A stretch of DNA of 64,000 bases from Malacoraja senta (Eukaryota). Shown piece by piece: positions 271-47,610 of this stretch. A program made the position numbers and the translations under genes. The notes below the pieces were generated by a model that ran no database searches, had not been told where the DNA came from, and saw nothing but the letters and a program-made list of their open reading frames with translations. Position 1 is the first letter of the stretch. Each line of letters opens with the position of its first letter. The stretch covers positions 19,220,001-19,284,000 of the forward strand of contig CM075981.1 in NCBI GenBank assembly GCA_038087875.1. The letters run 5' to 3'.

Positions 271-552
271 AGCCCGTGGCAGGAACACAGATCAAGGCTG
301 AGAACATCACCGAGATCTGCAACCTCTCCCTGACTTGCTTCGTGACCTCCGGCGGCCCCATCAACTTCACGTGGTGGAGGGAAGCTTTGGGAAATGACAG
401 CACCCACCACCTCGAGGGACACGGAAAGACAATACAGGTTTATCACACAGCAGAGGTCGGGGGCACTGTGTATACGTGTGAGGCCAGTAACCCGGTCAGT
501 AAGGGCACAGCACAGATCCGGCTGAGGGATATCTGTAAACAGTCCACATTTG
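271..552 (+). CDS. Gene A: CD2/SLAM-family receptor, IgC2 (second Ig) domain exon
   Basis: Polypyrimidine tract + ctcag acceptor; TTTG|gtgagt donor; 282 nt, phase 1-1. Encodes EPVAGTQIKAENITEICNLSLTC...W...YTCEASNPVS...DICKQSTF, with the four Cys and ASNPVS motif typical of SLAM/CD2 domain 2. Confidence 0.92.
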
Positions 553-869
553 GTGAGTGTCAAAGTGAGGATCCCAGGTTATTGGGAGGACAGTAGTTTA
601 TTTGTTCATTGGGACAGTGTATTGGGAGTGTGTGATGGGACAGTGTGGAGGGAACTTCACTCTATACCTAATCCATGCCAGGAGTGGGTGGGATAATGGC
701 ATAGAGGCACTAGGCCACATCTAACCCATGCCTTGGAAGGATTTAATACATAATTAACATTATTCTGTTCCCAAACCTTTCATCTCCATTTTTTTAAGCA
801 ACCACTGAGGCTTAATTAAAGTGGTACCTCTGCCCAGAATGCACTTCAGCTTTGTGGAGTCAACTCAGA

Positions 870-1525
870 TGTACCTTTGCTAATCCACTGCCTGGCCATG
901 TACAGGAGCAGAGTGATGAGAAGGTCCTTGTCCCCTTCTGCACTGACTGTCTATAGTTCAGGATCAAGGGGTTAAGTAGAGCCAAATCTTGATGACAGAC
1001 CCTTTAAACATTATAAACAGGCTGCAACCTCTCACTATCTGTGTGTACATGGAACATGTACTTGTCCAGGCTACAGAAAGCCAGGCAGGCTAAGGGGTTC
1101 ATGGGAGAATTAAAATCCTGTTAAACGAGACTGCTCTAAAACTAAAACTAAAACAAACAAAAACAGGTCTCTGAATGCCTCCAATGAACCAGTGGGCACT
1201 GCTTGCTCTCGCTTCTTTCACACCCATGGACGGATGTATCCTTGGAAGAAGGGCAGGCAGTCAGCCCAGATGGTACCTTCGACAATCCACTGCCTGACCA
1301 CGCACAGGAGCAGAGAGATGAGACGGTCCTTGTCCCCTTCTGCACGGACTGTCTACGGTTCAGGAGCAAGGGATTAAGTAGAGCCAAATCTTGAAGACAG
1401 ACCAAACAGGCTGCAACCTCTCATACGCTGTGTGTACATTAAACATGTACTTGTCCAGGCTGCAGAAAGGCAGGCAGGCTAAGGGTCCATAGGAGAATTA
1501 AAATCCTGTTGAATGGGACTGCTCT
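870..1525. repeat. Diverged direct duplication (~260 bp units, ~410 bp apart) in gene A intron
   Basis: caggagcagag...gtccttgtccccttctgcac...agagccaaatcttga...ggagaattaaaatcctgtt...gactgctct occurs at about 900-1137 and 1303-1525. Confidence 0.75.
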
Positions 1526-1659
1526 CTGCCACACTCTCCACCCTTGGTCCCATTCAGGCAGGGCTCCGCACCCACATCCACCATGCAGGATGATCATCAC
1601 AGTTTAAGTTTTGTTTTTAGTTTAGAGATACAACATGGAAACATACATTCACCGAACAT

Positions 1660-1921
1660 CGATCACCCATTCTCACTAGTTCTGTTTTATCCCACTTTTC
1701 ACATTGACTCCCTCCACATTAGGGGCAATTTACAGAGACCAATTAACCTGCAAACCCACACATCTTTGGGATGTGGGAGGAATCAGGAGCACCTGGAAGA
1801 AACCCATGTGGAGACAGGGAGAACATGCAAACTACACACAGACAACACCTAAGAGGATCAAACCCATGATCCTCTGACATTGTGAGGCAGCAGTTTTACC
1901 AACTACACCACGCTGCCGCCC
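1660..1921 (-). mobile_element. tRNA-derived SINE (HE1/V-SINE-like)
   Basis: Reverse strand begins ggcggcagcgtggtgtagttggt...gggtttgatcc (Pol III A/B-box-like), followed by the gtttgcatgttctccc core. A related copy is at about 41820-42030. Confidence 0.7.
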
Positions 1922-2815
1922 CAGTGTTTGTAAATGGCAAACAATGATGAAGAACTGGAGTGGGTGCTCGAACAGGTTGTACAGGGAACAACACCCTGTG
2001 CTGTGGAGCAGCATGGAAGGCATTTTTGAGAGACAGGACCACATTGTGTCAGACACAAAGAGGGTTTCAGAGCTGGAGTCCAATGAGCAATCCCAGCCAA
2101 ACAAGCTGTGCTCAGTTGGGAACATGCCACGCACCACCCTCCACTACATACAGTGATGTGGATCCCAAAAAACATCAGCAACAAGACTTGTTCAGCTCAC
2201 TCCTCCTCCATTTCATCTTTTCCCTGCCCAGTTACTGTGACTGGAGATGACCATGTCTCAGTCTCTGGAAAGATTCCAGTAAAAGACAGGCAATTCCCAC
2301 CGAGCAGCACAGCTATAAGGGTAAAAAAGACCCTAATGGGAGTTATTTATAGGTTCCGAAAATAGCCAGGATATAGGGTACAAGTTACATTAGGCAATAA
2401 AAGTGGCTTGTAAAAAAGGCAATGCTACGGTGGTCATAGGAGATTTCAATATGCAGATTGACTGGGAAAACCAGGTACTGGACCCCAAGAAATGAAATTT
2501 GCAGAGTGCCTTCGAGATGGATTTTCAGCAGCTTGTAGTGGAGCCTACCAGGGAAAATGCAATTTTGGATTTAGCATTATGTAATGAACCGGGTGTGATA
2601 AAGGGAACTCAAGGTAAAGGAACCAATTGGAGGTAGCAACCACAACATTATGTGTTTTAATCTGCAATTTGAGAGGGAGAAGATGAAATTGGATGTGTCA
2701 GTATTGCAGCTGGGCAAAGGGGACTATAGAGGCGTGAGGGAGGAGCTGGCCAAAGTTGACGGGAAAGGGACCCAAGGATGGATGACGGTGGAAGAGCAAT
2801 GGCAGGATTTTCTGC

Positions 2816-3906
2816 GAACCGACATCTACTACAAACCCACTGACTCCCATGGCATTCTGGACTACAATTCTTCCCACCCTGCTTCCTGTAAGGACCCTAT
2901 CCCCTACTCCCAATTCCTCCGTCTACGCCGCATCTGCACCCAGGATGAGGTGTTCCAAACCAGGGCATCGGAGATGTCCTTATTCTTTAGGGAATGGGGG
3001 TTCCACTCTTTGACGATAGATGAGGTTCTCACCAGGGTCTCTTCCATATCTCGCAGCTCTGCTCTCACTCCCCATCCTCCCACTCGTAACAAGGGCAGAG
3101 TCCCCCTTGTCCTCACCTTCCACCCTACCAGCCGTCACATACAACAGATAATCCTCCGACATTTTCGCCACCTCCAACGGGATCGGACCACTGGCCACAT
3201 CTTTCCATCTCCTCCCCTTTCGGCTTTCAGCAGAGACTGCTCCCTCCATAACTCCCTGATCAATTTGTCCCTTCCCACCCAAACCACCCCCTCCCCTGGT
3301 ACTTTCCCTTGCAACCGCAGGAAATGCTACACTTGTCGTTTTACCTACCCCCTCGACTCCATCCAAGGACCTAAGCAGTCTTTCCAGGTGAGGCAGAGGT
3401 TCACCTTCAACTCCTCCAACCTCATCTATTGCATCCGCTGCTCTAGGTGTCAACTGCTCCACATCGGTGAGACCAAGCGCAGGCTTGACGATTGCTTTGC
3501 CCAACACTTCCGCACAGTTCGCATTAACCAACTTGATCTCCCGGTGGCTCAGCACTTCATCTCCCCCTCCCATTCCAAATCTGACCTTTTCTGTCCCGGG
3601 CCTCCTCCATGGCCAGAGTGAGTCCCACCGCAAATTGGAGGGGCAGCACCTCATATTTCACTTGGGTAGTTTACACCCTAGCGGTATGAACATTGACCTC
3701 CAATTTCAGGTAGTCCTTGCATTCTCCCTCCTTCCCCTCCCCTGCCCAGCTCTCCCACAGCCCACTGTCTCAACTTTTCTTTTCTTCTTCCCCCACCCCA
3801 TCCCCCCCCCAAAAGTCTGAAGAAGGGTCTCGACCCGAAACGTCACCTATTCCTTCGCCCCATAGATGCTGCCTCACCCGCTGAGTTTCCCCACCATTTT
3901 TGTCTA
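2816..3906 (+). mobile_element. Penelope-like element, 5'-truncated (RT C-terminus + GIY-YIG endonuclease)
   Basis: TDIYYKPTDSH..LDYNSSHP..CKDPIPYSQFLRLRRIC; CNRRKCYTC; NLIYCIRCSRCQLLHIGETKRRL. Confidence 0.9.
3817..3844 (+). ncRNA. Minimal hammerhead ribozyme core in Penelope 3' end
   Basis: CTGAAGA-A-GGGT(CTCG)ACCC-GAA-ACGT-C: CUGANGA box, stem II, GAA, palindromic stem III and GUC cleavage triplet. Stem I is only about 2 bp. Confidence 0.7.
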
Positions 3907-5559
3907 TCAGGGAGAAAGTGCTTGGGAAGCTGAAAGGGCTGAAGGTGGATAAGTTACCTGGGCTGGATGGTACTGAGAGAGGTGGCTTTAGAGATTGTGG
4001 AGGCACTGATAGTGATTTTTCAGAAATCTCAGGAGTGGTCCCAGATGATTGAAAAATTGCCAATATTACCTCGCTGCACAAAAAGGGAGCAAGGCAGAAT
4101 AGTGGGAACTACCGGCCGGTTAGTCTGACTTCGGTGGTTGGTAAGATTTTAGAGACCATTATAAAGGATGAGGTTAGGAGTACTTAGAAGTTCACGATAA
4201 AATAAGTTGATGTCAGCATGACTTTGTGAAGGGGAAGTCTTGCTTGACCAATTTGTTGGAATTCTTTGAAGAAGTAAATAGCCGGACAGACAAAGGAGAG
4301 TCTGTAGAAGGTGTTTACTTCGATTTTCAGAAAGCCTTTGATAAGGTGCCACACGTTAGGCTGCTTAGGAAGATGAGAGTCCCCGGTATCAAAGAGCAGA
4401 TACTAGCAAGGATAGCAGGTTGGCTGAATGGCAGAAGACAAAGAGTGGTAATAAAGGGATCTTTTTCTGGTTGGCTGCCAGTGACTAGTCGAGTTCTGCA
4501 AGGGTCGGGACTGGGTCCGCTACTATTCACGTTGTATATTAATGATTTGGACGAGGGGATTGAAAACTTTGTGGTAGAATTTGTTAATGATATGAAAATA
4601 GGTGGAGGCGCAGGTAGTGTAGAGAAAGCAGGGACTCTGCAGAAGGACTTAGACAGGTTGGGAGAGTGGGCAAAGAAATGGCAGATGGAATATAGTGTAG
4701 CAAAGAGTGGAGTCATGCATTTTGGTAGTAGGAATAAAGGCATAGACTATTTTCTCAAAGGGGTGAGAATGCAGAAATCGGAGGTGCAAAGGGACTTGGG
4801 AGTGCTGATGCAGGATTCCCAAAAAGTTAATCTGCAAGTCGAATCGGTAGTAAAGAAAGCAAACTCAATGCTAGCATTTAGTTCAAGAGGACTTGTGTAC
4901 AAAAACAGTGATGTAATGTTGAGGCTCCATCAGGCGCTGGTCAGGCCGCCTTTGGAATATTGTGAGCAATTTTGGGCACCATATCTGAGGAAGAATGTGC
5001 TGGCTCTGGAGACGGTCCTATTCCTTATGACCTTATGAGCTGTCACTTGCCACTGGGTACTGCGTGTTGTCCCAAAGGCAGCACACCTGGAGGAAGAAAT
5101 TCATCACCAGTGCATGACATCTGGGAGGATGCTCAGTGTACAGAGTCCCAAGGCAGAGAGTCGCCACCTGGGTATGGACGCACACCTGCGACTAACCGCC
5201 CTCCTCAATCAGTAGATTCAGAACAGCAGCAGAGTCACATTGCTTTTCTTGCCCTGGAACAAAATCTCCATTGCTGGATCTTGGTGACATAGACAGCAAG
5301 TGGAACGAAAGTGACCAACTGGTACCACATGGTGATCACATGTAGGTTTATGATCAGCGATGGGCCCCTTTTGGAAAGCACTTGGAACAGTCCTGAACAA
5401 TGCAGGTGATTTCTACCTCCAGCTCCTGCCAGATTGTGAGAGTGCCCGTTTCCTGCACCCACACCGTATTCCCCAAAATATCTAAAATTCTGTCAAACTC
5501 TGTATTGACTAAAATAAAGGCACAAAGTGCTGCAGTCAAGACTCAACAGTCAAGAGAGT

Positions 5560-7490: not shown

Positions 7491-7941
7491 AGATAGGACA
7501 ATTCTTGCATTGCTGCAGCACAACAGGATATTGTAGTCATAAATACAGATCAGATCAGTGTGTCCAAATACCATAGAATATATAGATATAGAAACATAGA
7601 AACATAGAAAATAGGTGCGAGAGGAGGCCATTAGGCCCTTCATTGTGATCATGGCTGATCGTCCCCAATCAATAACCTGGGCCTGTAACCATATCCCTTG
7701 ATTCTACTAGCCCCTAGAGCTCTATCTAACTCTCTCTTAAATCCATCCAGTGATTTGGCCTCCACTGCCCTCTGTGGCAGGGAATTCCACAAATTCACAA
7801 CTCTCAGGGTGAAAAAGTTTTTCTCACCTCAGTCTTAAATGACCTCTGTTTATTCTAAGACTGTGGCCCCTGGTTCTGGTTCTTGATATACACACATCAA
7901 TAAACAGATAAAGTGCAATAGGCTGTTATAGTTCAGAGTTT

Positions 7942-8109
7942 TAAAGAAGGAACTGCAGATGCTGGAAAATCGAAGGTACACAAAAATGCTGGAGAAACTC
8001 AGCGGGTGCAGCAGCATCTATGGAGCGAAGGAAATAGGCAACGTTTCGGGCCGAAACCCTTCTTCAGTCTGAAGAAGGGTTTCTTCAGTCTCCAGCATTT
8101 TTGTGTACC
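7942..8109. mobile_element. Short palindromic hammerhead-bearing retroelement with 14-bp TSD
   Basis: Flanked by ATAGTTCAGAGTTT at 7928-7941 and 8110-8123. Minus-strand core CTGAAGA-AGGGTTTCGGCCC-GAAACGTT at 8067-8040, followed by a partial sense copy. Confidence 0.75.
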
Positions 8110-9327: not shown

Positions 9328-9450
9328 ATCAAGATAATGGAGTGTTGACAATTACATTGATATTGGTCTTTGTCATTGTGGTCGTTGCCATTGTGGTCGC
9401 TGCCATTGTGATTCGCATCAAACGTCACTCAACAAGGGACGGGCCAGCAG
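9328..9450 (+). CDS. Gene A: transmembrane exon
   Basis: ttttctcctctccag acceptor, phase 1. Encodes DQDNGVLTITLILVFVIVVVAIVVAAIVIRIKRHSTRDGPA (hydrophobic helix + basic stop-transfer). Ends CAG|gcaagt (GC donor), phase 1, matching the next exon. Confidence 0.88.
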
Positions 9451-9991: not shown

Positions 9992-10080
9992 ACCCAGGGC
10001 CCACAGAGACTATCTACGCACAGGTCGAGCAACCACAGAGACGTCCTGCCAAACGGCAGCCTCCGGAGGGATATGAGACG
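9992..10080 (+). CDS. Gene A: cytoplasmic exon with ITSM (TIYAQV)
   Basis: ctctctctaccccacag acceptor, phase 1. Encodes DPGPTETIYAQVEQPQRRPAKRQPPEGYET. Donor ACG|gtaacg, phase 0. Confidence 0.85.
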
Positions 10081-10189
10081 GTAACGGAACACGTTCTGAC
10101 CCATGGGAGAGGGGATCAGTGGGACTGAACCCTCAATCCTAGAGACCACTCTCACTATCCCCAGCCATGCCAGGGTTAAAAATGGGCAC

Positions 10190-10540
10190 ACACCCAGTTA
10201 CTGGAGTACACTGTCCTCCACCTACCCAGTTACTGGGGTATACTGTCCCCGCACACTAGTTACTGGGGTACAGGATCCCCCACACACACAATTACTGGTG
10301 TGCACTGTCCCCACACCCCCAGTTACTGGGGTTCACTGTCCCCGCACACCAGTTACTAGGGTACACTGTCCCCACACACCCAGTTACTGGGGTACACTGT
10401 CCCCGCACACCCAATTACTGGTGTACACTGTCCCCACACCCCCAGTTACTGGGGTTCACTGTCCCCGCACACCAGTTACTGGGGTACACTGTCCCCACAC
10501 ACAGTTACTAGGGTACACTGTCCCCACACACCCAGTCACT
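10190..10540. repeat. Minisatellite, ~28-30 bp unit (ccagttactggggtacactgtccccacac), about 12 copies
   Basis: Direct tandem array without spacers, in the last intron of gene A. Confidence 0.9.
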
Positions 10541-10626
10541 GTGCTATGCCTTCTTCTCTTTACACAGTTGAGTGTGTCTAGAGCACAACGTCCCTTTGCT
10601 GTGAACACTCTCTGCTTTCTCTACAG

Positions 10627-10785
10627 GTTCAGAGACAGGAGGAGAGAATGGAGATCATTGCCTCCGTATATGATACTGTCAACTTACCTGGGACCTCAGG
10701 CATTGGATCACTGGACGCCCCTGGAAAGTCCCTGCACTGTAAGCCAGGAGATGTCCATCCTCCACCCCAGCCCGGGGCCCACTGA
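10627..10785 (+). CDS. Gene A: terminal cytoplasmic coding exon with SVYDTV motif
   Basis: ctctgctttctctacag acceptor, phase 0. Reads VQRQEERMEIIASVYDTVNLPGTSGIGSLDAPGKSLHCKPGDVHPPPQPGAH then TGA at 10783-10785. This frame is not in the supplied ORF track. Confidence 0.75.
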   Translation, partial: VQRQEERMEIIASVYDTVNLPGTSGIGSLDAPGKSLHCKPGDVHPPPQPGAH

Positions 10786-11300
10786 TCCCAGACCGGGGCA
10801 GCGATCCTACACCACAGAAGAAGGTCCTTCAACACACCATGCACATGCTGACTATCCATTTAATACACTTGCTATGGGGCCGTCTGTGCCTTGGTTATTC
10901 AAGTGCTCCATAAGCAGTGTGAGAGTCTCTGCCTCCACCACCAAAGATACTAGAGCAGAGCAAGATAGACCACTCCTGCAAAATCCAATAGTGTAGTACG
11001 CTACAGAGTGTAACTTCCGCCATTTCAGTGAACCCGACCCGACTTCAGTTATGCCTCTCGCATTGTAATCAGCGTTGCGGGGGAAGAGTGTGTGTTTTTA
11101 AATGTTTTAAATGTTTTTTAGATGTTCTTTTTAAATGGCTCATGCCCTGTGTTTGAATCGACTTTTGTATTAAACATATATAAATGTGATATAGATGCAT
11201 ATAATTATATAACACACATATATATTTCTCTAGTTTCTTATATATATAAACACATATATATTCATTATATATTATATATATACATATGATGCATATATAT

Positions 11301-14300
11301 ATATTTATTTTTTATTTTTATTCGAAGCAATTGTACAAGAATAAAACATTCTGCATGTAAAATTATACAATTATTGTACAGCTTCAATTTTGACCTTTTA
11401 ACTTGAAAATGAGAGAAAACAAGAGAGAAGGAAAAGGTGAAAAGTGAAACGATAAGATCCCTAGACTACCAATGTAGTGTGGCCAAAGAGTGAGTAAAGG
11501 TACAAGAGAGGAAAAGGGGGGAAAAACAACAAAAAACAAAAACAAAGGGAAAAAAAGAAGGTGGGGATATACCTGCCCCTCGTTCCCCCCCCTCCCCCCA
11601 CCCACCTCACCCAACCCATAGTTGGATTTAAATCCAAATTAGTGTTGCGTCATACTATCCTTGTAAGAATTCGGTAAAGGGTGTCCATGTCTTGAAAAAT
11701 TGAACTGTTTTTTCTGCCAGGACAAGCCTAATATTTTCCAAATGTGGTGTCTCAGACATGTTTGTAATGCACATCTTTGCAGTAGGGACTGATGTGTGTT
11801 TCCAAAATGTAAGTATTAATTTTTTCGCCGTTATCAGGCCATAATTAAGGAATCGTCTTTGAAATAGTGTTAGCTCAGAACAGGCTTCTGACGGACCTAG
11901 AGTAATCAATTCTGTGTCGGGGTCCAATTTTATTTGAAGTATTTTAGAAAAAATTTCAGAAATTCCCCTCCAGAAATTATGTAGCTTTATACATGAGGCA
12001 AAAGAATGAGTTATGGTTGCTTCCTGAAGGAGACATTTATCACAGATAGGAGAGACATTTGGGAAGATCTTATTCAGTTTAGACTTTGAATAATAAAGTC
12101 TATGCAGGATTTTAAATTGTATTAACGAATGACTAACGTTAAGAGAACAGTTATGTATATGTAGAAGGCTTTCCTCCCATCTACCTTTTAAAATTGTTAG
12201 GCCCAATTCATCTTCCCAAGCTCGCCTAATTATTTCCGACGATGGGATTTGTATATTTAAAAGGGTATTATAAAGGTACGATATTAACTTATTTGAATCC
12301 GAGTTTCTATTCATGCATTCGTCCAGTATGTCTGGAACCATATATTGACAGTCTTGGGTATGTGATTTCAGATAGTCTCGTATTTGAAAATATCTAAAGT
12401 GTTGGCTACCTTTCAGGTGATATTTCAACTGTAATTCTTGAAATGAGAGGAGAGTACCCATCTCATAAAGATCTCCCAGTATTTTAATTCCTAATCTTTC
12501 CCAATGTGTGAACGCCTTGTCTAAAATAGACGGCTTAAACGAGGGATTGTTGTCGATTGGTGAGAGAAGAGATAAATTTCTCAATTTAAGGGTTGACTTC
12601 ACTTGTTTCCAGATTCGTATGGTACTGTGGATAATCAGGTTTTTCTCATATACTGATTTCTTCCGATTTATTGGAGAGAGAAGAATCGCGCCTATATTAA
12701 AAGGCGAGCAATTTTCTCCATTGTTAACCAATTTACCTGTTGGCATGTATTGTCCATCCAATAGATTAAGTTTTTAATATTCGTTGCCCAGTAATAGAAC
12801 AAATAATTAGGGAGAGCCAGTCCGCCAATTTCTTTGGGTTTACATAAATGTCGTTTATGGATTCTGTGTGTTTTATAATCCCAGTTTGTGATCACAGAAC
12901 TGAGTTTTAAAAAAAATGTTTTAGGGAGAAAAATCGGTTGAATTCAATCGGTATTGATTGAAATAGGTACAGGATTTGTGGAAGGAGGATCATCTTTATG
13001 GCATTTATTCTACCCATGAGGGAAATCGGAAGCGTTTTCCAAAATTGAATAAGGGCATTTAGTTAGGTAATTAATGGTGGAATGTTTGCTTGAAATAGAG
13101 AAGTATATTTTCTAGTTACATAAACTCCAAGATATTTAAATTGATTGAAATAGGTACAGGATTTGTGGAAGGAGGATCATCTTTATGGCATTTATTCTAC
13201 CCATGAGGGAAATCGGAAGCGTTTTCCAAAATTGAATAAGGGCATTTAGTTAGGTAATTAATGGTGGAATGTTTGCTTGAAATAGAGAAGTATATTTTCT
13301 AGTTACGTAAACTCCAAGATATTTAAATTTTACCGTAGCAATTCTAAAAGGAAATTTTAGAAGGTGTGTCGGATCTTGAGGTTTTATTGACATAATTTAA
13401 TTTTTGTTCCAATTTATTCTATATCCTGAAAAGGAACCAAATTCCTCTATAAGATTTAGTATGTTTGGAATACTCTTGGGAATTGGTGATATATAGTAGT
13501 ACGTCATCTGCATAAAACGATATTTTATTATTAGAATATTTAGTATTATAGCCATGAATATTCGGATGTACTCTTATGCTTTCTGCTAACGGTTCAATCG
13601 CAAGGGCAAATAACAGAGGTGATAACGTATAAACCCAGTTCGATCAGAATGTATTAATTTACTGACGTATATGCTTAGTCTTCTTGCCAGGGTTTTAGCT
13701 AATATTTATTTATTTATTTTTTTGCTTGGGCAGTTTTTTTTTAGTTTTTTTAATATTTTATTAGAAGTACAATTGTATACAATCATATTTTCATAATACA
13801 TTTTATGTACAGCTTTTTACTTTTTTATTATAGTAAAGAAGGAAAATAAAAAGAAATTAGATAATAAAGTATAGAAAAACGTGAGATATATAGTGCGTGG
13901 AGAAGAAGAATAGAGAATGAAAGAAGAAAGTTAAAGAGTAGAAAATAGAAAAAAGAGAGTAAAAAAAAAAGGAAAAAAAAGAAAAAAGAAGAAAGGAGAT
14001 CTTATTTATAATCTTGGCCATCCCTCGTCCAGTCCCGAGACAGTTAGCTTTTACAATTGTGTTGCACCATATGATTCCAAAAAGACGACAAATGGAGACC
14101 AACTCGTTATGAATTGGTCAGATATATCTATTAGGAGGAATCACATAAAGGTATAAAATTAGCATTGAATAATGCTTTATGTTTTCTAGTAATCTGAATA
14201 CCCAAATATTTAAATTTTCTGTTGCTATTTTAAAGGGGAACTTCAGTAAGTGTGTAGATTCTTGAGGTTTTAACGTCATGATTTCACTTTTATTCCAATT

Positions 14301-26771: not shown

Positions 26772-26802
<31 letters not shown>

Positions 26803-28879: not shown

Positions 28880-29430
28880 GTCGGGGGAGGAGGTGGTTTG
28901 AGTGGGAAGGGACAAGTTGACCAGGGAGTTGTGGAGGGAACGGTCTCTGCCGAAAGCAGAAAGGGGTGGAGATTGGGAAGAAGTTGCCAGTAGTGGGATC
29001 CCGTTGGAGGTGGTGAAAGTGTTGGAGATTATATGCTGTTTGCAACGGCTGGTGGGGTGGAAGGTGAGGGCAAGGGGGACTGTCCTTGTTGTGAATGGGA
29101 GCAAGAGCAGAGCTGCAGGGTATCGGGAGAGCCTAGTGAGAGCCTCATCTATAATGGAAGAGGGGAACCCCCATTTCCTAAAGAATGAGGACTTCTACGA
29201 TGATCTAGTATGGAAAACCTCGCCCTGTGTGCAGATGCGGCATAGATGAAGGAATTGGGAGTAGATGATAGAGTCTTTACAGGAAGCAGGGTGGGACGAA
29301 GTGTAGTCTAGATATCTATGGGAGTCAGTAGGTTAGTAGTAGATGTCGGTCAATAGTCTGTCTCCTGTGATGGAGTGGGCAATATTCAGAAACGGTCAGG
29401 AGATGTCGAAGATGGTCCAAGTGAACCTGC
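28880..29430 (-). mobile_element. Penelope-like fragment
   Basis: Reverse-strand homology to 2816-3300 (VPLALTFHPTSR, SPPLSAFGRDRSLHNSLV). A decayed hammerhead-like end lies at about 28745-28810 on the + strand. Confidence 0.8.
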
Positions 29431-29440
29431 TCCTTTGCTA

Positions 29441-29612
29441 AAGAAGGAACTGCAGATGCTGGAAAATCGAAGGTACACAAAAATGCCTGAGAAACTCAGC
29501 GGGTGCAGCAGCATCTATGGAGCGAAGGAAATAGGCAACGTTACGTTGCCTATTTCCTTCGCTCCATAGATGCTGCTGCACCCGCTGAGTTTCTCCAGCA
29601 TTTTTGTGTACC
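29441..29612. mobile_element. Palindromic short retroelement of the 7942-8109 family, hammerhead core deleted, 13-bp TSD
   Basis: About 70-bp near-perfect arms centred at about 29541; TG(C/T)TCCTTTGCTA at 29428-29440 and 29613-29625. Confidence 0.8.
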
Positions 29613-29724
29613 TGTTCCTTTGCTACATCTACACCAGCAGTTTGTGTCCTTTTCTGAAATTAATCAATGCCTGCAGTTCTTTGTTTCTACATTTTCACTG
29701 GAAACACTTAAAAACAGCACTCAC

Positions 29725-29822
29725 TGATGATGTGGGTGGCGACAGTGACTGATAGGAGAATCAGAAGCAGGACGGCTGTAATCGTGGCCCTCAACCAACA
29801 TCACAGAGACAGCTTCTCAACC
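29725..29822 (-). pseudogene. Gene B: candidate transmembrane exon, out of frame with IgC2 as assembled
   Basis: cctctctttcaccag acceptor and ATCA|gtgagt donor. One frame encodes CWLRATITAVLLLILLSVTVATHII. The exon is 98 nt and the phase-1 reading gives GLRSCLCDVG*; one extra base would join the frames. Confidence 0.6.
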
Positions 29823-30019
29823 CTGGTGAAAGAGAGGGGATCACTCATCAGGGAGACTGCACTGGGCCTTTTCACAAACTCAGCAAGAACTTAGGGCCCG
29901 CACCGTAGACTGACATCAAATAACTGTGACAGCGCTGTCCATTCACACACTCCCAGAGCACGGATAGACACAGAGTGAAGCTCTCAAGGTCGGATACAGA
30001 GTAGCACTGCTCAGACGCC

Positions 30020-34590: not shown

Positions 34591-34626
34591 ATTCTTCAAA
34601 CCTGGGATCCTCACTTTGACACTCAC

Positions 34627-34908
34627 CAAATGTGGTCTGTTTACAGATATCCCTCAGCCGGATCTGTGCTGTGCCCTTACTGACCGGGTTACTGGCCTCA
34701 CACCTGTACACAACGCCCCCGACCTCTGCTGTGTGATAAACCTGTATTGTCTTTCCGTGTCCCTCGAGGTGGTGGGTGCTGTCGTTTCCCAAAGCTTCCC
34801 TCCACCACGTGAAGTTGATGGGGCCGCCGGAGGTCGTGAAGCAGGTCAGGGTGAAGTTGCAGATCTCGGTGATGTTCTCAGCCTTGATCTGTGTTCCTGC
34901 CACGGGCT
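34627..34908 (-). CDS. Gene B: IgC2 domain exon (paralogue of 271-552)
   Basis: Same splice sites and 282 nt length as the gene A exon; 6 substitutions in 94 aa; all four Cys retained. Upstream intron homology extends to about 35160. Confidence 0.9.
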
Positions 34909-35369
34909 CTGAGGTTGGGCCAGAGAGAAGAAAGATGAGTAAAGGAGTTACTTATAAACCCTTCGATACCCAATAACCCGTCTCCGACAGTCACGAGCCA
35001 CGAATGAGCCGATCCCAGCTCATTTCCACCCACCAGTTTAATTCTTCCCTCCCCATTCTATTCAGCCAGTTGTTGCTGGAGGAAGTCCACACGTGCGCTG
35101 CGCCCCCTTCCCGAACACTGCCCGCACTCATCCACAAACTCTCCACTGTGTCCAGTTTATGGCTCTGTATCCTGGGAATCTCTTCAGTTCCATATCTTTT
35201 GTCACGCTTGTGAGTGGTGCCAGTGTTCCTTAAAACCTGAGGGTGACCCAGCTCAGACCGGCCCTGAACCTGGCCAACCGTGGCAGCCTTGGGACTGTGA
35301 CGGGCACAGACCCAGACTGGGTAGCTTGCTGTGTTCCAGAGTGAATCCAGCACCGTGCAGATCCTGGGT

Positions 35370-36600
35370 CACGTATTGTAGTGGGATCTTGATTGGTTGG
35401 GCAGGTGAGCTCATGGATGGTTAATGGAGTTCAGGTTTGGTCACCCTGCTACAGGAAGGATGCTGTTCGGCTGGAAAGAATGCAGAGAAGATTTACAAGA
35501 ATGTGGTCAGGATGTGAGGGCCAAAGCTATAGGGAGAGTTTGGGCAGGGACGTTGCTGGTGTCTTCCACTGTGAAGACTGACGCAAAAAGTTATTCAGCT
35601 CCCCTGCCATTTCTTTATTCCCCATTATCATTTCTCCTGCATCATTCTCCAGTGGCCCAACATCCACTCTTGCCTCTTTCTTACTCTTTATATAACTGAA
35701 GAAACTTTTGCTCTCCTCTTTTATATTATTGGCTGGCTTACCTTCGTATTTCATCTTTTCTCCCCATATTGCCTTTTTAGTTATCTTCTGTAGTTCTTTA
35801 AAAGCTTCCCAATCCCCCCACTAATCTTTGCTATGTTATATCCCTTCTCTCTTAGTTTTATACTGTCCTTGATTTCCCTTGTCAGCCACGGTCACCACTT
35901 TCTCCCCCAAAAATTTTTCTTCCTCTTTGGAATGAAAAGATCCTGCATCTTCCGGATTATGCCCAGAAATTCCTGCCATTGCTGTTCCACTGTCACCCCT
36001 GCTAGGGTCTCTTTCCAGTGAACTTTGGCCAGCTCCTTCCTCATGCCTCTGTAGTCCCCTTTACTCAGCTGCAATACTGACACATCCGATTCTCCCTCTC
36101 AAATTGCAGACTGAAACTTATCATGTTGTGATTGTTACCTCCTAATGGTTCCTTTACCTTGAGTTCCCTTATCAAATCCGGTTCATTACATAACAGAATC
36201 CAGAATTGCCTTTTCCCTATTAGGCTCCAGTAGAAGCTGCTCTATGAATCCATCTTGGAGGAACTCTACAAATTCCCTTTCTTGGGTCCAGTACCAACCT
36301 GATTTTCACAGTCTATCTGCATATTGAAATCTCCCATGACCACCGTTGCATTGCCCATTTTTAAATGCCAATTTTATCTCCTGATGTAACTTGTACCCTA
36401 TATCCTGGCTACTGTTTGGGGCCTGTAAATAACTACCATTAGAGTATTTTTACCCTTATAATTTCTCAGCTCTATCCACAATGACTCTACATCTTCTGAT
36501 CCAATGTCACCCTTCATCAAAGACTGAATTTAATTCCTAACTAACCCCACCCCCTCTGCCCACCTTTCTATCTTTCCGATAGGACGTATAACCCTGAATA
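35370..36600 (-). mobile_element. CR1 LINE fragments
   Basis: Endonuclease and RT-flanking remnants (MSVLQLSKGDYRGMRKELAKV; ESKSFFSYIKSKK) homologous to the other CR1 copies. Confidence 0.8.
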
Positions 36601-38031
36601 CTTGAATGGCCAAATGGCGTACTTCTACTCCTAGAAGTTATGAACATGATCAACTGATGCCAAGTCGTAAAGACATGACAAAGTGTTCTGCAAAAGACAG
36701 AGGGGGGTGGGGCTGACATCTGACCACATCTCCACTAGAGGGCGCAGGTGGGGAGGAGGAGCACATCAGGTATGAAGAGCAGGACGTTGTAAACAGTGTG
36801 TTTATAGGTTCAGAAGCTCATAAGCGATAGGAGCAGAATTAGGCCATTCGGCCCATCGTCTACTCCGCCATTCAAACATGGCTGATCTATCTCTCCCTCC
36901 TAACCCCATTCTTCTGCCTTCTCCCCCTAAACTCCATTGGAACATCGTATACCCAGTGGCAGGAAAACCTCACCAATCGCGACCCCGTCACTCGGGGCCA
37001 GGCACAGTCTTCATTGGCTTTCCTGACATCTTGGAGGCTGAAGGGCCAACAACCCCAGACATCTCTATTTTAGATATATCTGGTTATATATATAAGAGCG
37101 AGCGTCAATTACTCAGCCTACGTATTTGGCGCTGCCTCGCTCTCCCTCCACGTTAGCAGTCGGGGAGCGCAGCGGCCCGGGGCTGCTCTTAGTGTTGTTA
37201 CCGGTTAGATCCCTCGAATTGTCAGAGCCGGGACATGACTGGGCCGCCGTGAAGAAGGGTGCAATGGTGCGGTGGGGGGTTCGGCGGCGGTCAGAATGGG
37301 ATGGCTGCGGGTTATAATGTGCCATCGTTCCTCTCTCCCTTGTCTCTCTCTCCCTTGTCTCTCTCTCTCTTGTCTCTCTCCCCCTTCTCTCTCTCTCTCT
37401 CCCATTCTCTCTCTCTCCCCCTTCTCTCTCTCGCCCCATTCTCTCTCCTTTCTCTCGCACCTCTCTCTCCTTTCTCTCTCTCTCCTTTCGCTCTCTCTCT
37501 CTTCTCTCTCTCTCACCCTTCTCTCTCTCCCAGGGCCGGATTTAGATGAAGAGAGGCCCTAAGCTGTTCCAATTGTGAGGCCCCTCCAAATCCCCCTCCC
37601 CCACAACTAGAGGAAGATGGTCCACCAGATTGACACCGATTTGCAGCCGAGCGTGACCTAAGGGGCTGGAAAGCTGTGCTTTTATTTATTTATTTATTGC
37701 CAGTACTAGTGTCGAGTTATTGGCTTAAAACACTATTATTCTGAAATGGAAGGCAAGGAAAATTACTGACGGGTTGTTTAGAGACTACAGTGCGTTTTGA
37801 CAGCATAGGTAAGAAAGGCCTATGACAGTGTCAAAAATATTATACACCTTGCAGGGCTCTCACTTAACTTTTTTCCCCTGTTGTCAGCCGGGCAACCTTG
37901 GCAGCTTTTTAAGTTGTCAAATGACAGTTTAGGTGGTCATTTAAGACGGCTTGCATGACGTGTGCGATAATGTGCTCGGACGAAGTGCGTAGTTACCAGT
38001 CGGAATTATGCTCAATGAAGCATTCACATAT

Positions 38032-41744: not shown

Positions 41745-43642
41745 GCCTATTTCCTTCGCTCCATAGATGCTGCCTCACCTGCTGAGTTTCTCCAGCATTT
41801 TTGTCTACCCATTTACACAAGTTCTGTTATCCCAATTTCCTCACCCACTCCCTACATATTAGGGGCAATTTTACAGAGACAAGTTAAACTACAAAGCCAA
41901 TGCGTCTTTGGGATTTGGGAGGAAACCCACACGCTTGCAGAGAGAATGTAACACAGACAGTGCCTGAGGACAGGATCGAACACAGATCTCTGGCGTGTGA
42001 GGCAGCAAGTCTACCAGCTGTGCCACTATATTTTGTTTTCCAACAAACAAAAAATTATAGGTTGATAACTTTGGTTACTAAAAAAATGAAAATATCCATT
42101 TTCAGTTTTAAATCTCCAAGTGACGCTATGTCCCCTTTACAGCTACTGTATGTTTAATTAAATTCAAGACTATGGGGCAGTACATTGGCCATAAAGTTGC
42201 TACCTAAAAGTGCCAGAGGCCCGTGAATTGATCCTGAATATGGGTGCTCTCTGTATGGAGTTTGCTCTTTTTCCCTTTGATCGCATGGTTTTCTCTGGGT
42301 GCTCTTGTTTCCTTCCACATTCCAAAGGTGTGCAGGAACCTATTTCAGACCCAACCCAAAACATAATATTTTCCATTTGTCCAGAGATTCTGTCTGACTT
42401 GTTGAGTTACTTCAGCTTTTTGTGTCTATCTTCAGTTTACACCAGCATCTGCAGTTCCTTCCTGCACGCACAATACTATATATTAGAACTTNNNNNNNNN
42501 NNNNNNNNNNNNNNNNNNNNNNNNNNNNNNNNNNNNNNNNNNNNNNNNNNNNNNNNNNNNNNNNNNNNNNNNNNNNNNNNNNNNNNNNNNNNNNNNNNNN
42601 NNNNNNNNNNNNNNNNNNNNNNNNNNNNNNNNNNNNNTCTCGTTTATAACATTGTTTACAGAGTACTATGTTTACATATTCTGTTGTGCTGCTGCAAATA
42701 AAGATTTCATAGTTCTAACTGGGACGTGAGAGAATAAAACACTCTTGACTTACTCCGCTAATGTGTGGAATAGAACTAGTGTACGGGTGATCGGTGGTCG
42801 GCGTGGACTCGGTGGGCCGAAGGGCCTGATTCCATGCTGTATCTTTAAATTAAACTAAAAACACTAAAACCACAGGGAGTCTAAAGAAGGGTCTTTACCC
42901 GAAACGTCACCCAATTTCTTCTATTCAGAGTTGCTGGCTGCTCCATGGAGCTCCCCCGCACAATTAAAGCATGGAATAGTCTTCACCCTACCATAGTTAC
43001 ACAACCAGACGCAACTAAATTTAAGGTACCTCTTTTTTCCCCCAAGAACCCTTTTTTGCTTAAGTCCAAGTCAAGAGTCAAGAGAGTTTTATTGTCATGT
43101 GTCCCAGATAGGACAATGAAATTCTTGCTTGCTGCAGCACAACAGAATAGGTAAACATAATACAGAACAGGAGATAAAAGTTCAGTGTGTTTATATACTA
43201 TAGACCATATATATACACAATAAATAAACAGATAAAATGCAATAGGCTGTTATTGTTCAGCCCTCCACCACCTCCAGTTTAAATTCCATTTAGAATATTT
43301 ATGGAGGACCAGGAAACCATAAGCAAGAGTTACTCCAGGAGTTACTCCAGATCCAGGGTCAGGGAGTGATTCTGCGTTGGTTTTCAGCGGTCGCGGCCGT
43401 GGTTGTGCGCATGTGCAGGGAGAGGATGTGCTGGTCGTAGCAGTGCGCACGTGCAAGGCGGCCTGCTGTGCCGGCGGATGAGGAGCGAGCGGAGACCTGA
43501 TGGAGACGGAGAGTGACAGAGAGAAAGAGAGATAGAGAGTGGGTCCTATGAAGCCTAGTGGTAAATCCAGCTCTGCGAGGCCCCCCTGGATATCGAGGCC
43601 CTAAGCTTAAGCTTGTTAAGATTATACCTAAATCCGGCCCTG

Positions 43643-46600
43643 CTCTCTCCCCTCTCTCTCTCTCTCCCTTCCTTCTCCCCCTTCCCTCTCTCACCCCCTT
43701 CTCTCTCCCCCTTCTCTCTCTCTCTCCCTTCTCTTTATCTCTCCTGTCTCTCTCTCCCTTCTCTCTCTCTCTCCCTTCACCTTCTCTCTCCCTCTCCCAC
43801 CCTCTTCTCTCTCTCTCCTTCTCTCCCCTCTCTCCTTTCTCTCCCTCTCTCCCTTCTCTCCCTTCTCTCCCTCTCTCTCTCCCATTCTCTCTCTCCCTTA
43901 TCCCCCCCTTCTATCTCCCCTTCTCTCCTTTCTCTCTCTTTCCCTCTGTTCTCTCTCCTTTCTCTCTCTCTCTCCCTTCTCTCTCCCCTTCTCTCTCTCT
44001 ATCTCCCTTCTCTCTCTCCCTTCTCTCTCTCCCCTACTCTCTCCCCCCCAATTCTCTTGATCTCTCCTGTCTCTCTCTCGCTCCCTTCTCTCTCTCTCTC
44101 CCTTCACTCTCTCTCTCCCTTCTCTCCCCCTTCTCTCTCCCCCCTTCTCTCTCTCTCCCCCTTCTCCCCCTCTCTCCCCATTCTCTCTCTCCTTTCTCTC
44201 TCTCCTTCCTTCTCTCTCCCTTCCCTCTCTCTTGCTTCTCCATCTTTCTTCTCTCTCTCTCCCTTCTCATCTCACTCCCTTCTCTCTCTCCCTCTCTCCC
44301 CTCCCTTCTCTCTCTCTCCTTCTCTCTCGCTCTCTCTCCATCCCTTCTCGCTCTCTCTCCCTTCTCGCTCTCTCTCCCTTCTCTCCCCTCTTCTCTCTCT
44401 CTCCCCCTTCTCTCTCTCTCTCCTCTCTCCCTTCTCTTTCTCCCTTCCCTCGCTCTCCCTTCTCCCTCTCTCACCCTTCGTCCCTTCTCTCTCTCTCTCC
44501 CCTCTCCTTCTCTCCCTTCTATCCCTCTCTCCCATCCGTCTCCCTCTGCTCACTCTCACCCCCTTCTCTCTCTCTCTCTCCCTTCTCTCTCTCTCCTCAT
44601 TCTCTCTTCTCTCTCTCTCCCCTTCTCTCTCTCTCCCCATTCTCTCTCTCTCCTTTCTCTCTCTCACCCTTCTCTCTCACCCCATCTCTCCCCCTTCTCT
44701 CTCTCTATCTCCCTTCTCTTTCCCTCTCTCCACTCTCCCCATTCTCTCCCTCTCTCCCTTCTCTCACTCCCCCCTTCTCTCTCTCCCGTCTCTCTCTTCT
44801 TTCTCTCTGTTCTATCTCTCCTTTCTCTCTCTCTCTCCTCTCTCACCTTCTCTCTCTCCCCTTCTCTCCCCCTTCTCTCTCTATCTCCCTTCTCTCTCTC
44901 CCTTCTCTCTCTTCTCTCTCTCCCCATTCTCTTTATCTCTCATGTATCTCTCCCTCTCTCCCTCTCTCCCTTCTCTCCCCTTCTCTCTCTCCCCATTCTC
45001 TCTCTCTCACTCCCTTCCTCTCTCTCTCCCTACCTTCTCTCTCTCCCTTCTCTCTCTCTCCCCTCTCTCTCCCCTTCTCTTCCTCTCTCTCCCTTCCTTC
45101 TCTCTCCCCATTCTCTTTATCTCTCCTGTATCTCTCTCTCTCTCCCTTCTCTATCTCTTCTCTCCCCCTCTCTCTTCTCTCTCTCTCCCCATTCTCGTTA
45201 TCTCTCTCTCTCTCCTCTCTCTCCCTTCTCTCTCTCTCTTCTCTCTCACCCTTCTCTCCCTTCTCTCTCTCCCCCTTCTTTCTCTCCCCCTTCTCTCTCT
45301 CCCCATTCTCTCTCTCTCCTCTCTCTCCCTTCTCTCTCTCCTCTCTCTCCCTTCTCTCTCTCCTTTCACCTTCTCTCTCCTCTCTCGTTTCTTTCTCTCC
45401 CTCTCTCCCTTCCATCCTCTCCCCCCTCTCTCTCCCCTTCGCTCTCTCTCCTCTCTCCCTCTCCCTTCCTCTCACCCCACTCTCCCTCCCTTCTCTCTCG
45501 CTCTCCCCGTTCTCTCTCTCCCCCATTCACTCCTTCTCTCTCCTTTCTCTCTCCTCTCTCTCTTCTCTCTCACCCTTCTCCTCTCCCTTCTCTCCCTTCT
45601 GTCTCTCTCTCTCTCTCTCCCATCTCTCTCTCCCCATTCTCTCTCTCCCATGTCCCCCCCCTTCTATATCTCTACTCTCCCATGTCCCCCCCTTCTATAT
45701 CTCTACCCCGCTTCTCTCTCTCTTTCCCACCGTTCTCTCCCCCCCCTCTCTCTCTTTACCTCCCTTCTCTCCCCCTTCTCTCTCTCTCTCTCCCTTCTCT
45801 CTCTCTTCTCTCTCTCCCTTCCCTCTCTCTCGCTTCTCCCTCTCTCCCTCCCTCTCACTCCTCTCTCTCCCTCTCTCTCCCCTCCCTTCTCTCTCTCTCT
45901 GTGTCCCTTCTCTCTCTCTTCCTCCCTTCTCTCTCTCCCCCCCTCTCCCTTCTCTCCTTCTCTCCCTCTCTTCTCTCTCTCCCTTCNNNNNNNNNNNNNN
46001 NNNNNNNNNNNNNNNNNNNNNNNNNNNNNNNNNNNNNNNNNNNNNNNNNNNNNNNNNNNNNNNNNNNNNNNNNNNNNNNNNNNNNNNNNNNNNNNNNNNN
46101 NNNNNNNNNNNNNNNNNNNNNNNNNNNNNNNNNNNNNNNNNNNNNNNNNNNNNNNNNNNNNNNNNNNNNNNNNNNNNNNNNNNNNNNNNNNNNNNNNNNN
46201 NNNNNNNNNNNNNNNNNNNNNNNNNNNNNNNNNNNNNNNNNNNNNNNNNNNNNNNNNNNNNNNNNNNNNNNNNNNNNNNNNNNNNNNNNNNNNNNNNNNN
46301 NNNNNNTCTCTCCCTTCTCTCTCCCCCTTATCCCCTTCTCTCTCTCCCCATTCTCTCTCTCCTCTCTCCCCCTTCCTTCTCTCTCTTCGTTCCCTCTCTC
46401 TCGCTTCTCCCTCTCTCGTCTCTCTCTCTCCCCCCTTCTCTCTCACTACCTTCTCTCTCTCTCCCTCTCTCTCTCCCCTCCCTTCTCTCTCTCTCTCTCT
46501 CCCCATTCTCTTTATCTCTCCTGTATCTCTCTCTCTATCTCCCCCTTCTCTCTCTCCCTTCTCTCTCTCCCTTCTCTCTCTCTCTCCCTTCCTTCTCTCT

Positions 46601-46860
46601 CTCTCCCTTCCCTCTCTCTCCCTTCCCTCTCTCTCCCTTCTCCCTCTCTCTCCCTTCTCTCTCACCCCTCCTCTCTCCTCTCTCTCCCTTCCCTCNNNNN
46701 NNNNNNNNNNNNNNNNNNNNNNNNNNNNNNNNNNNNNNNNNNNNNNNNNNNNNNNNNNNNNNNNNNNNNNNNNNNNNNNNNNNNNNNNNNNNNNNNNNNN
46801 NNNNNNNNNNNNNNNNNNNNNNNNNNNNNNNNNNNNNNNNNNNNNNTCTCTCTCCCTCCC
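43643..46860. repeat. Very long CT-rich polypyrimidine low-complexity tract (continuation of 37330-37530)
   Basis: Almost only C/T on the + strand, with recurring ctctctcccttct-like units and two N gaps. Confidence 0.95.
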
Positions 46861-46959
46861 TGCCACGGCTCCACCCCTCTCTCGCCTCGGGGAGACGCGG
46901 TGATGAATACACTGGGAGGGCCGAGCCACTGATACTGTCCAGTGCCTCCCCAGCCATAG

Positions 46960-47132
46960 ACATCACCGCATACCCACAAATATTTATAGCGCCAAAAAAG
47001 ACGATTCCAGCGGTTTTTAAAGAAGGTACGCGTTCCGTGTGAGTGTGCCGAGGCGGCCATGTCCTCCACATGGATTGTGCTGCCCCGTGCGTCACGCCCT
47101 TTGACCCGATGACCTTACGTGCAACCCCCACT
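46960..47132 (-). mobile_element. Terminal fragment related to the 30493 element
   Basis: atgtcctccacatggattg...ccgtgcgtca.gccct.tgaccc..tgac.ttacgtgcaacccc is the reverse complement of the 30493-30565 terminus. Confidence 0.65.
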
Positions 47133-47292
47133 ATACAAAACATTTGCTGTAGAGCAGAGCACTAGGGAACGTTTCTGGCAGTCAGTGGGGTTCAGTAAAC
47201 TGGGGAACGCACAGGATCTGCCGCACATTAATTGGGCGGGGGGTGGTTCAGGAGCTGGTGAATCCCGGGACCTCTGTGGCAGTCTCACTCAC

Positions 47293-47610
47293 CGTACACC
47301 TCCAGTCGGACTCTTGCATGAGTTTCATCTCCTGAACTTGTTCCAAAAGTCACCTCATATTCACCAGCGTCCTCTCCCCGTAGATTACGGATTTCCAGAC
47401 TGAAGTTCCTGCGGTGAAGAGTTACCCGTCCCTTGTAATTGACGTTATAGTATTCAATCTTCCCATTCGAGTGTTCCGCTATCTTGATTCTGGGCGATGC
47501 CCGCCTCCACACAACTTCCGTAATGTCCGATGAGACTGTGATCCCAGCAGGTAAGGAGACCGAGTGTCCCCGAGCTCCGGTCACGGTGCCAGCGGCGGAC
47601 CCAGTCCCAG
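47293..47610 (-). CDS. Gene B: CD2/SLAM-family IgV (first Ig) domain exon
   Basis: tctcttgtctcctcag acceptor; TACG|gtgagt donor; 318 nt, phase 1-1. Encodes GTGSAAGTVTGARGHSVSLP...VVWRR...YKGRVTLHRRNFSLEIRNLRGEDAGEYEV...RLEVY. Cys-less V domain with SLxIxNL..EDAGxY, characteristic of CD2/SLAM domain 1. Confidence 0.9.

Follow-up and report, generated by a model that had tools for sequence, protein, structure and literature searches.

This locus raises the question of whether two receptor genes of the CD2/SLAM family, which lie tail to tail in the genome of the skate Malacoraja senta, form a paired-receptor system in which the partners share an ectodomain and differ in their membrane and signalling ends. 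The window analyzed here is a stretch of 64,000 nucleotides (assembly GCA_038087875.1, contig CM075981.1, positions 19,220,001 to 19,284,000 of the forward strand), and positions without another label refer to it. An initial annotation of this DNA had proposed a signalling receptor on the plus strand (gene A) and, on the minus strand, a partner with a shared ectodomain that is either adaptor-coupled or a decoy (gene B). We compared the window with annotated proteins and loci of skates, rays, sawfish and sharks, which carry the P and L labels of the analysis; the loci were L001 of Amblyraja radiata (CM021389.1), L003 of Rhinoraja longicauda (CM130186.1), Rhinoraja L004 and Pristis L005. Additionally, we used L002, a 1361-nt transcript contig from another skate (run SRR13269356) whose product, P0153, has an A-type tail, and X6, an independent DNA-like run whose contigs were compared with window positions 29001-35000. 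We estimate a probability of roughly 65% that the window contains a single copy of a module conserved among elasmobranchs, namely two tail-to-tail CD2/SLAM receptor genes with a predicted paired-receptor architecture. The proposed architecture is supported by the conserved tail type of gene B, the recurrence of the module in relatives and the likeness of the receptor heads within a species.

The shared ectodomain was most evident in the C2-type immunoglobulin (IgC2) exons. The exon of gene A at 271-552 (plus strand) and that of gene B at 34627-34908 (minus strand) were identical at 271 of 282 nucleotides (96.1%) and at 87 of 93 complete codons in terms of the encoded residue, and the originally reported agreement of 88 of 94 residues was recovered once the split codons were counted. 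Nine codons differed, six of them by replacement and three by synonymous changes only. Both exons were bounded by an AG acceptor and a GTGAGT donor, were in phase 1 at each end and encoded four cysteines. A self-comparison using blastn placed the two exons within an inverted repeat of 92% identity over 561 bp (22-580 on the plus strand against 35159-34599), the left arm of which holds the gene A C2 exon and approximately 250 bp of the intron upstream of it. The upstream introns are thus homologous, as had been suggested, and the inverted homology ends approximately 28 bp downstream of the exon. Within the repeat, the identity was 96.1% in the exon and about 82-88% in the intron.

The initial annotation had itself raised the possibility that the second C2 copy is a false inverted duplication produced by the assembly. 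The region is rich in gaps and repeats and contains six runs of N, which would suit such an error, but we regard it as very improbable. Between the two copies, 11 of 282 exon sites and approximately 12-18% of the flanking positions are different, and each copy is embedded in unique flanking sequence. In addition, an X6 contig of 318 nt over 34599-34916 was specific to copy B, with only two differences from it, and the same convergent layout was present in Rhinoraja and Pristis (both genes) and in Amblyraja (facing tail exons). We therefore consider both C2 copies to be real.

Gene A enters the window with its C2 exon, which matched Pfam ig/Ig_3 and was 91% identical in nucleotides to the spliced transcript L002; the 5' end of the gene, including the V exon, lies upstream of window base 1. 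The transmembrane (TM) exon at 9328-9450 (DQDNGVLTITLILVFVIVVVAIVVAAIVIRIKRH) encodes a TM core that is uncharged, as had been described, followed by RIKRHSTRDGPA (RIKRH), and it ends at a GC donor (AG/GCAAGT). The first cytoplasmic exon (9992-10080) contains TIYAQV, an immunoreceptor tyrosine-based switch motif (ITSM), at 10009-10026. The last coding exon (10627-10785) contains SVYDTV at 10663-10680 and the stop codon at 10783-10785, and the 3' untranslated region extends to at least 11029. L002 matched the C2, TM, first cytoplasmic and last exons with nucleotide identities of 87.5-93%, and its alignment broke at the predicted junctions; in particular, it ended exactly at 9450 and covered 10626-11029 at 92%. 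At the junction that follows the TM exon, P0153 reads RDGPA/DPGPTE. In tblastn comparisons, the first cytoplasmic exon showed 82% identity to P0153 and 87% identity to P0004 of Rhinoraja longicauda, whose tail is the same as that of gene A.

All three tyrosine motifs that had been assigned to the gene A tail were found, but they are not of equal standing. TIYAQV and the S-variant SVYDTV were conserved in P0153, P0004 and the shark proteins P0047 and P0203. GYETV, which straddles the junction between 10080 and 10627 (10069-10080 plus 10627-10629), has a tyrosine that is peculiar to this sequence, since the relatives have asparagine in its place (EGNEKV, EGNKTV and EGNEMV), and it is therefore not a conserved signalling site. 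Judged by its predicted protein, gene A is a classical SLAM-type receptor with a V-C2 ectodomain, a switch-motif tail and an uncharged, poorly conserved TM segment (only about 53% amino acid identity to the closest skate relative). The intron between the two cytoplasmic exons also contains a tandem array with a period of approximately 31 nt (10187-10541; self-match offsets of approximately 63, 94, 125, 156 and 186 nt).

Gene B could be followed on the minus strand from the signal peptide to the tail. The coding part of exon 1 at 50205-50259 (MDIRCLLSCFWLSLPVSI), which encodes the signal peptide and ends at a phase 1 donor (GTGAGT), was located by tblastn with P0160, P0022 and P0172. The V-type immunoglobulin (IgV) exon at 47293-47610, for which only coordinates had been given before, proved to be real by its Pfam V-set match (E 4e-11). 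This exon has AG/GT borders and phase 1, it also matched Receptor_2B4 below the cut-off (E 0.0027), it encodes no cysteine, as in CD2/SLAM V domains, and it was 90.9% identical in nucleotides to the V exon of the A-type transcript L002. Beyond the C2 exon, the gene continues into a TM exon of the CxxR...H type at 29725-29822 (tblastn identity of 88-92% to P0158, P0161 and P0174) and a last coding exon at 25670-25718, which was supported by tblastn and by alignment to four skate copies; the tail RPIRGTADRPHKTE and the stop codon (25672-25670) are encoded at 25714-25670. Characteristic of this 3' end are a cysteine-rich stalk (SCLCGC), an arginine at the outer membrane boundary, a histidine near the inner boundary and a 16-residue tail without tyrosine. 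A tblastn search with the TM and tail exons of gene A revealed no A-like TM or tail exons in gene B. Thus the TM-like exon with an arginine and the tyrosine-free tail of the earlier proposal are real and of a conserved type, but the TM exon is one base out of frame in the assembly: read from a phase 1 entry, it gives GLRSCLCDVG and then a stop codon, and the neighbouring frame encodes the hydrophobic stretch CWLRATITAVLLLILLSVTVATHIIS (29800-29723).

In the annotated B-type isoforms P0194 of Mobula birostris and P0188 of Hypanus sabinus, the C2 exon is joined directly to the last one; the symmetrical TM exon is left out in frame, and the products end in GSHPGTGAEGRLHKAE. Such isoforms would be secreted.

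The gene B ending was found to be shared widely among batoids. The pattern ...SCLCGC(W/R)LRAT..AVLLLIL.S.TVA.H(I/V)IS-S(R/H)P..G....HK(T/A)E was common to Rhinoraja (P0158 and P0172), Amblyraja (P0161 and P0152), Hemitrygon (P0174), two species of Mobula (P0182 and P0186) and Pristis (P0183), and the corresponding segments of the window are CWLRAT..VATHIIS and RPxxGTADRPHKTE. The gene B TM exon showed 88-92% identity to P0158, P0161, P0152, P0174 and P0186 and 77% identity to P0183 and P0182, and the final exon showed 79-86% identity to P0152, P0158 and P0161. A homologous TM segment, PC(L/T)(V/A)K...HVIS, was present in the sharks Cetorhinus, Scyliorhinus torazame and Mustelus, in which the basic residue, the cysteine at position -3 and the His-(V/I)-I-S end were kept. 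Compared between the window and the rays and sawfish, the B-type TM segment was 77-88% identical, the C2 domain 55-68% and the V domain 46-51%; likewise, the TM exon was 97% identical in nucleotides to that of Amblyraja, versus approximately 90% for the C2 exon and the introns. When the TM reading frame was compared with the first 150 homologues by blastp-short, no match was significant by itself, and the link became clear only with a second set of homologues. An ESM Atlas query with the TM segment and tail returned only generic single-pass matches below 0.9, which were not used. By the pattern of conservation across species, the gene B 3' end is a bona fide elasmobranch tail type and not a chance reading frame.

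The facing arrangement of the two tail types was also observed in related species. In Rhinoraja L003, the A-type gene P0004 faces the B-type P0160 locus, in which the B-type TM exon and the last exon are intact, and in L004 the B-type gene P0158 lies opposite further A-tail exons, which form a second set. In Pristis L005, the B-type gene P0183 faces the ITSM gene P0166. In Amblyraja L001, only tail exons show the arrangement, with the last exon of a B-type gene opposite exons of an A-type tail. The module of an ITSM gene and a charged-TM gene therefore recurs twice in Rhinoraja and once in Pristis, with facing tail exons only in Amblyraja, and the paired layout is probably present in sharks as well. 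The inverted homology in L003 was confined to the C2 exon (16904-17227 against 28896-28574, 90%). Some public gene models obscure these arrangements: P0160 stops by read-through after C2 although a B-type TM exon lies downstream, and P0161 of Amblyraja fuses the V exon of one unit to the C2 and TM exons of the next.

Two further features of these loci were observed. In Amblyraja L001 (9553-10756 on the minus strand and 21461-35257 on the plus strand), A-type tail exons stand without a visible TM exon or head on the same strand, and they adjoin a signal-V-C2 unit of opposite orientation that has no membrane exon; the cause may be a genomic rearrangement, perhaps an inversion, or else an error of the assembly or of the gene model. 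In Rhinoraja L003, a 3.5-kb inverted duplicate (1-3585 against 11039-14601, 93-97%) of the 5' part of P0004 contains a second V copy, in which the tblastn match was split between two frames.

To compare the history of the heads with that of the tails, the building of ectodomain trees had been proposed; we obtained them for both C2 and V, together with the matches of the TM exon in other elasmobranchs by tblastn. The two C2 exons of a locus were closer to one another (96.1% in the window, 96.8% between two Amblyraja units) than exons of the same tail type were across species (83-91%), and window gene B was 93.5% identical to P0153, which differs from it in both tail type and species. In a maximum-likelihood (ML) tree of 71 C2 rows, window A and window B were sisters (support 100/95), and the B-type label required 14 changes, the maximum possible. 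Monophyly of the B-type C2 sequences was rejected, with a delta lnL of 524 and a p value of 0.0023 in the approximately unbiased (AU) test. In the V tree, the nearest neighbour of every B-type V in the sampled species was a conspecific ITSM-type V, although the two Mobula pairings were weakly supported. The pairs included P0183 with P0166 in Pristis (100/100), P0204 with P0203 in S. torazame (100/99), P0174 with P0179/P0184 in Hemitrygon (99/93, 95% identity), and P0160 and P0158 with P0154 in Rhinoraja (99/97). The V domain of window gene B fell into a clade with Amblyraja B-type unit 2 and the A-type mRNA product P0153 (100/98), within which its sister join to P0153 reached only 92/25. The C2 and V heads thus group by species and not by tail type, a grouping that is the signature of paired receptors and points to concerted evolution of the ectodomain exons between partners.

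The assignment of both genes to the CD2/SLAM family was examined from several sides. In addition to the V-set match, the C2 domain gave an ig match (Pfam, E 7e-6), and V-set and C2-set domains follow one another with one phase-1 exon each. A search of solved structures with P0153 revealed CD2 (9.7e-8), CEACAM1 (4e-7), CD48 (2.6e-5), SLAMF6 (8e-5) and SLAMF5 (2.8e-4). On account of the V-C2 layout, the cysteine-less V domain, the four-cysteine C2 domain and CD2, CD48 and SLAMF proteins as the closest relatives, the predicted products of genes A and B are members of the CD2/SLAM family. A scan of NCBIfam, a prokaryote-oriented library, was empty. SLAM-like annotations by NCBI occur in Amblyraja, Rhinoraja, Pristis, Hemitrygon, Mobula, Cetorhinus and Scyliorhinus, where orthologues and paralogues are named 'SLAM family member 5-like', 'T-lymphocyte surface antigen Ly-9-like', 'SLAM family member 9-like' and 'CD48 antigen-like'. 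The relatives thus have automatic SLAM-like annotations already, but these describe neither the two classes of tail nor the module nor the concerted evolution of the heads. A literature search on the SLAM family in sharks and cartilaginous fish yielded no relevant paper.

Several observations weigh against reading the window as an intact paired module, beginning with the extent of the shared head. The V exon of gene A lies off the window, so that within the window C2 alone is seen to be shared and a common V domain is deduced from other species only. Furthermore, the convergent neighbours P0004 and P0160 of Rhinoraja share 73% of their V residues, and the ITSM partner closest to P0160 by V is P0154. 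A second group of observations concerns the reading frame of gene B. Its TM exon has 98 nt, compared with 99 nt in Amblyraja, as one G of TGTGGATG is absent at approximately 29802/29801, and in its last exon one C of GCTCCCGCC is missing at approximately 25715 relative to four skate copies, which puts this exon out of register with phase-1 entry. Over 29703-29842, an X6 contig had no mismatch to the assembly and exactly one extra letter somewhere in this stretch, and the read evidence bears on the break in the TM exon only. Thirdly, three RNA-labelled runs covered only transposon-like repeats in this part of the window (29.4-29.8 and 30.4-31.4 kb) and neither the C2 nor the TM exon, and two of these runs look like DNA; no transcript-derived B-type protein was present among the homologues found. 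A homologue search with a piece spanning C2 and the B-type TM segment, aimed at short transcript reading frames, also gave no match. Finally, the arginine marks the outermost limit of the hydrophobic core and could be merely juxtamembrane, and the asparagine of the NxxR motif is replaced by cysteine.

A rival reading, which draws on the two frame breaks and the missing transcripts, is that gene B is decaying as a pseudogene, or that its product is no more than a truncated, secreted V-C2 protein with the end GLRSCLCDVG; its C2 exon would then be a relic of duplication and gene A the only working receptor. The independent loss of a single base from each of two exons (TM and last) relative to all orthologues would be expected of such a gene, as would the relatively frequent replacement changes in C2 noted above. 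Against this, the rest of gene B is intact, including the start codon, signal peptide, V, C2 and every splice site, and base-level alignment of the TM exon with that of Amblyraja showed identical splice sites and, among the few differences, conservative changes only. A search with 61 nt centred on the TM-exon break, which comprised the 31-mers of the assembly across 29802, listed no run with the assembly version, and X6 too was absent; indirectly, this places the extra letter of X6 among the words sampled across the break. Moreover, the listed X6 contigs differed from the assembly by 18 one-base gaps and 13 substitutions in approximately 2.2 kb, and several of the gaps adjoin short homopolymers. 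This excess of gaps over substitutions suggests frequent one-base consensus errors in the assembly and not natural variation. We therefore lean towards the view that both one-base gaps in gene B are assembly errors, and we consider true decay of the gene unlikely, though far less so than duplication by the assembly. If the breaks were real, gene B could still yield a soluble protein.

Taking gene B as an intact receptor, we asked how its membrane exon might act. Its TM segment is conserved above the ectodomain and its basic residue is invariant, as would be expected of a segment that contacts a partner protein; on this basis, gene B may be coupled to a signalling adaptor through the basic TM residue, which we take to lie at the same depth as the arginine of receptors coupled to FcR-gamma. 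It is also conceivable, if rather doubtful, that gene B is intact and acts with no adaptor, as a short-tailed adhesion molecule or decoy resembling mammalian SLAMF8, SLAMF9 and CD48, its arginine being juxtamembrane. In that case, the conservation of the TM segment would have another cause, such as dimerization through the SCLCGC stalk or membrane sorting. The names 'SLAM family member 9-like' and 'CD48 antigen-like' that NCBI pipelines give to some orthologues, the position of the Arg/Lys before the 21-residue hydrophobic core and not inside it, the absence of the NxxR asparagine and the soluble TM-skipping isoforms of rays are all compatible with such a molecule. It accounts poorly for a TM segment conserved far beyond the C2 ectodomain in the comparisons of the window with rays, and for a basic residue (R/K) and a cysteine at -3 that are invariant from sharks to skates, a pattern typical of TM segments that contact a partner.

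In the paired arrangement that we favour, gene A would work as mammalian SLAM receptors do: its switch motifs TIYAQV and SVYDTV, once phosphorylated, would recruit phosphatases or SH2 adaptors. Binding of SAP or EAT-2 by the phosphorylated ITSM is a hallmark of the ITSM-bearing SLAM subfamily. Gene B would sense a ligand that is the same as, or similar to, that of its ITSM partner, and its basic TM residue would pair with an acidic adaptor carrying an immunoreceptor tyrosine-based activation motif (ITAM), of the kind of DAP12, FcR-gamma or CD3-zeta, which would make it the activating counterpart; alternatively, it could serve as a tail-less or soluble decoy, in line with the TM-skipping isoforms annotated for its ray orthologues. 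The V and C2 heads may be kept alike in each species by gene conversion or unequal exchange, with the two tail types kept apart. From the geometry of the locus, the inverted C2 exons bracket both 3' ends, and an inversion between them could swap the tails. Extended to the whole group, this leads to a tentative proposal, to which we give less than even odds: an elasmobranch SLAM paired system that predates the split of sharks and rays, in which the CxxR/K...His exon couples to an ITAM adaptor, and this exon and the ITSM tails stay separate as tail cassettes of tail-to-tail modules as V-C2 heads are repeatedly copied between them.

We compared this arrangement with known receptor systems. The features shared with mammalian SLAMF1-7 (SLAM, 2B4, Ly-9, CD84, NTB-A and CRACC) and with CD2, CD48 and CD58 are the V-C2 layout, one phase-1 exon per domain, a V domain without the canonical disulfide, a four-cysteine C2 domain and, in gene A, the ITSM tail (TxYxxV). 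The tail-to-tail module and the species-wise homogenized heads, in contrast, are not features of the mammalian SLAM cluster, and we know of no mammalian SLAM gene with a near-identical twin that has a basic TM residue and a stub tail. Like the classical paired receptors (KIR, LILR/PIR, SIRP, CD300 and CEACAM), the locus would combine linked genes with similar ectodomains and a tyrosine-motif tail opposite a short tail with a charged TM segment, and, as in those families, the ligand-binding exons evolve in concert within a species. It differs from them in belonging to another immunoglobulin family, in having an ITSM switch tail instead of a tail with purely inhibitory motifs (ITIM), and in a V identity of 73-95% depending on the pair. 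Compared with the NxxR segments of FcR-gamma-coupled receptors (LILRA, OSCAR, GPVI and NKp46), the elasmobranch TM segments carry cysteine at position -3, where asparagine stands in NxxR, in 13 of 13 sequences, with C(W/R)LR as the batoid form and C(L/T)(V/A)K as the shark form. The closest conceptual parallel is offered by the activating and inhibitory CEACAM pairs, in which gene conversion maintains the likeness of the partners (Kammerer and Zimmermann 2010, PMC2832619). The closest precedent comes from Xenopus, where an expanded CD2/SLAM family includes some members with an NxxR TM segment (Guselnikov 2011, Immunogenetics 63:679, as cited in PMC4536121). As far as that secondary account goes, the frog and elasmobranch families would have in common a non-mammalian expansion in which some members have ITSM tails and others a basic-residue TM segment of the FcR-gamma-binding type; they would differ in that the frog segment is NxxR, and the elasmobranch one is CxxR/K with an inner-face histidine, a cysteine-rich stalk and its own conserved 16-residue tail.

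The continuity of the window was also considered. The six runs of N (26397-26540, 27072-27200, 42492-42637, 45987-46306, 46696-46846 and 47721-47920) are all intronic and at least 110 bases from the nearest exon, and the reading frames are independent of the gaps. The exons that flank them are collinear in order and orientation with the orthologous Amblyraja radiata locus (L001). Continuity itself is less secure, as five of the six runs lie inside satellite-rich stretches (approximately 37.0-47.1 kb and 25.8-28.6 kb) that are absent in Amblyraja, and the collinearity refers to the flanking exons only. A C/T-rich satellite of approximately 3 kb (plus strand, 43638-46695, GC skew of about -0.95) is interrupted by runs of N, and shorter arrays related to it occupy two other gene B introns (26637-27071 and 37322-37531); Amblyraja has none of these at the matching places. 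Reverse-transcriptase reading frames (Pfam RVT_1, E 3e-15 to 1.5e-30) at 4226-5035 (plus), 32785-33561 (plus) and 61302-62843 (minus) mark retroelement copies in or beside both genes. A short element at 7941-8067 was 96-97% identical to L001 28675-28801 and 45580-45703, compared with a background of approximately 90%, an excess that marks it as a mobile element, either young or highly conserved. The segment 2314-3296, considered as a collinear marker of the introns of genes A and B, was rejected because it belongs to a dispersed repeat that recurs at 35964-36460, 28884-29350 and 59754-60153.

In response to pressure from pathogens, paired receptors have emerged repeatedly, in which an inhibitory or switch receptor open to exploitation by a pathogen is shadowed by an activating or decoy twin, and they have been well studied in the mammalian KIR, LILR, SIRP and CEACAM families. 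In the SLAM family, such pairing has so far been only hinted at in frogs. Judging from the present locus, a SLAM-type version of this arrangement, built as a repeatable two-gene module with a very conserved membrane exon of its own, appears to be maintained in skates and rays and probably in sharks. The locus also indicates that public gene models for such regions are incomplete. The CxxR/K...H pattern provides a concrete, testable motif for adaptor coupling in cartilaginous fish. If the proposed system is correct, it would provide an early instance of activating/switch pairing among SLAM receptors and would add a new adaptor-binding TM motif, and the paired logic of the SLAM family would date to early jawed vertebrates.

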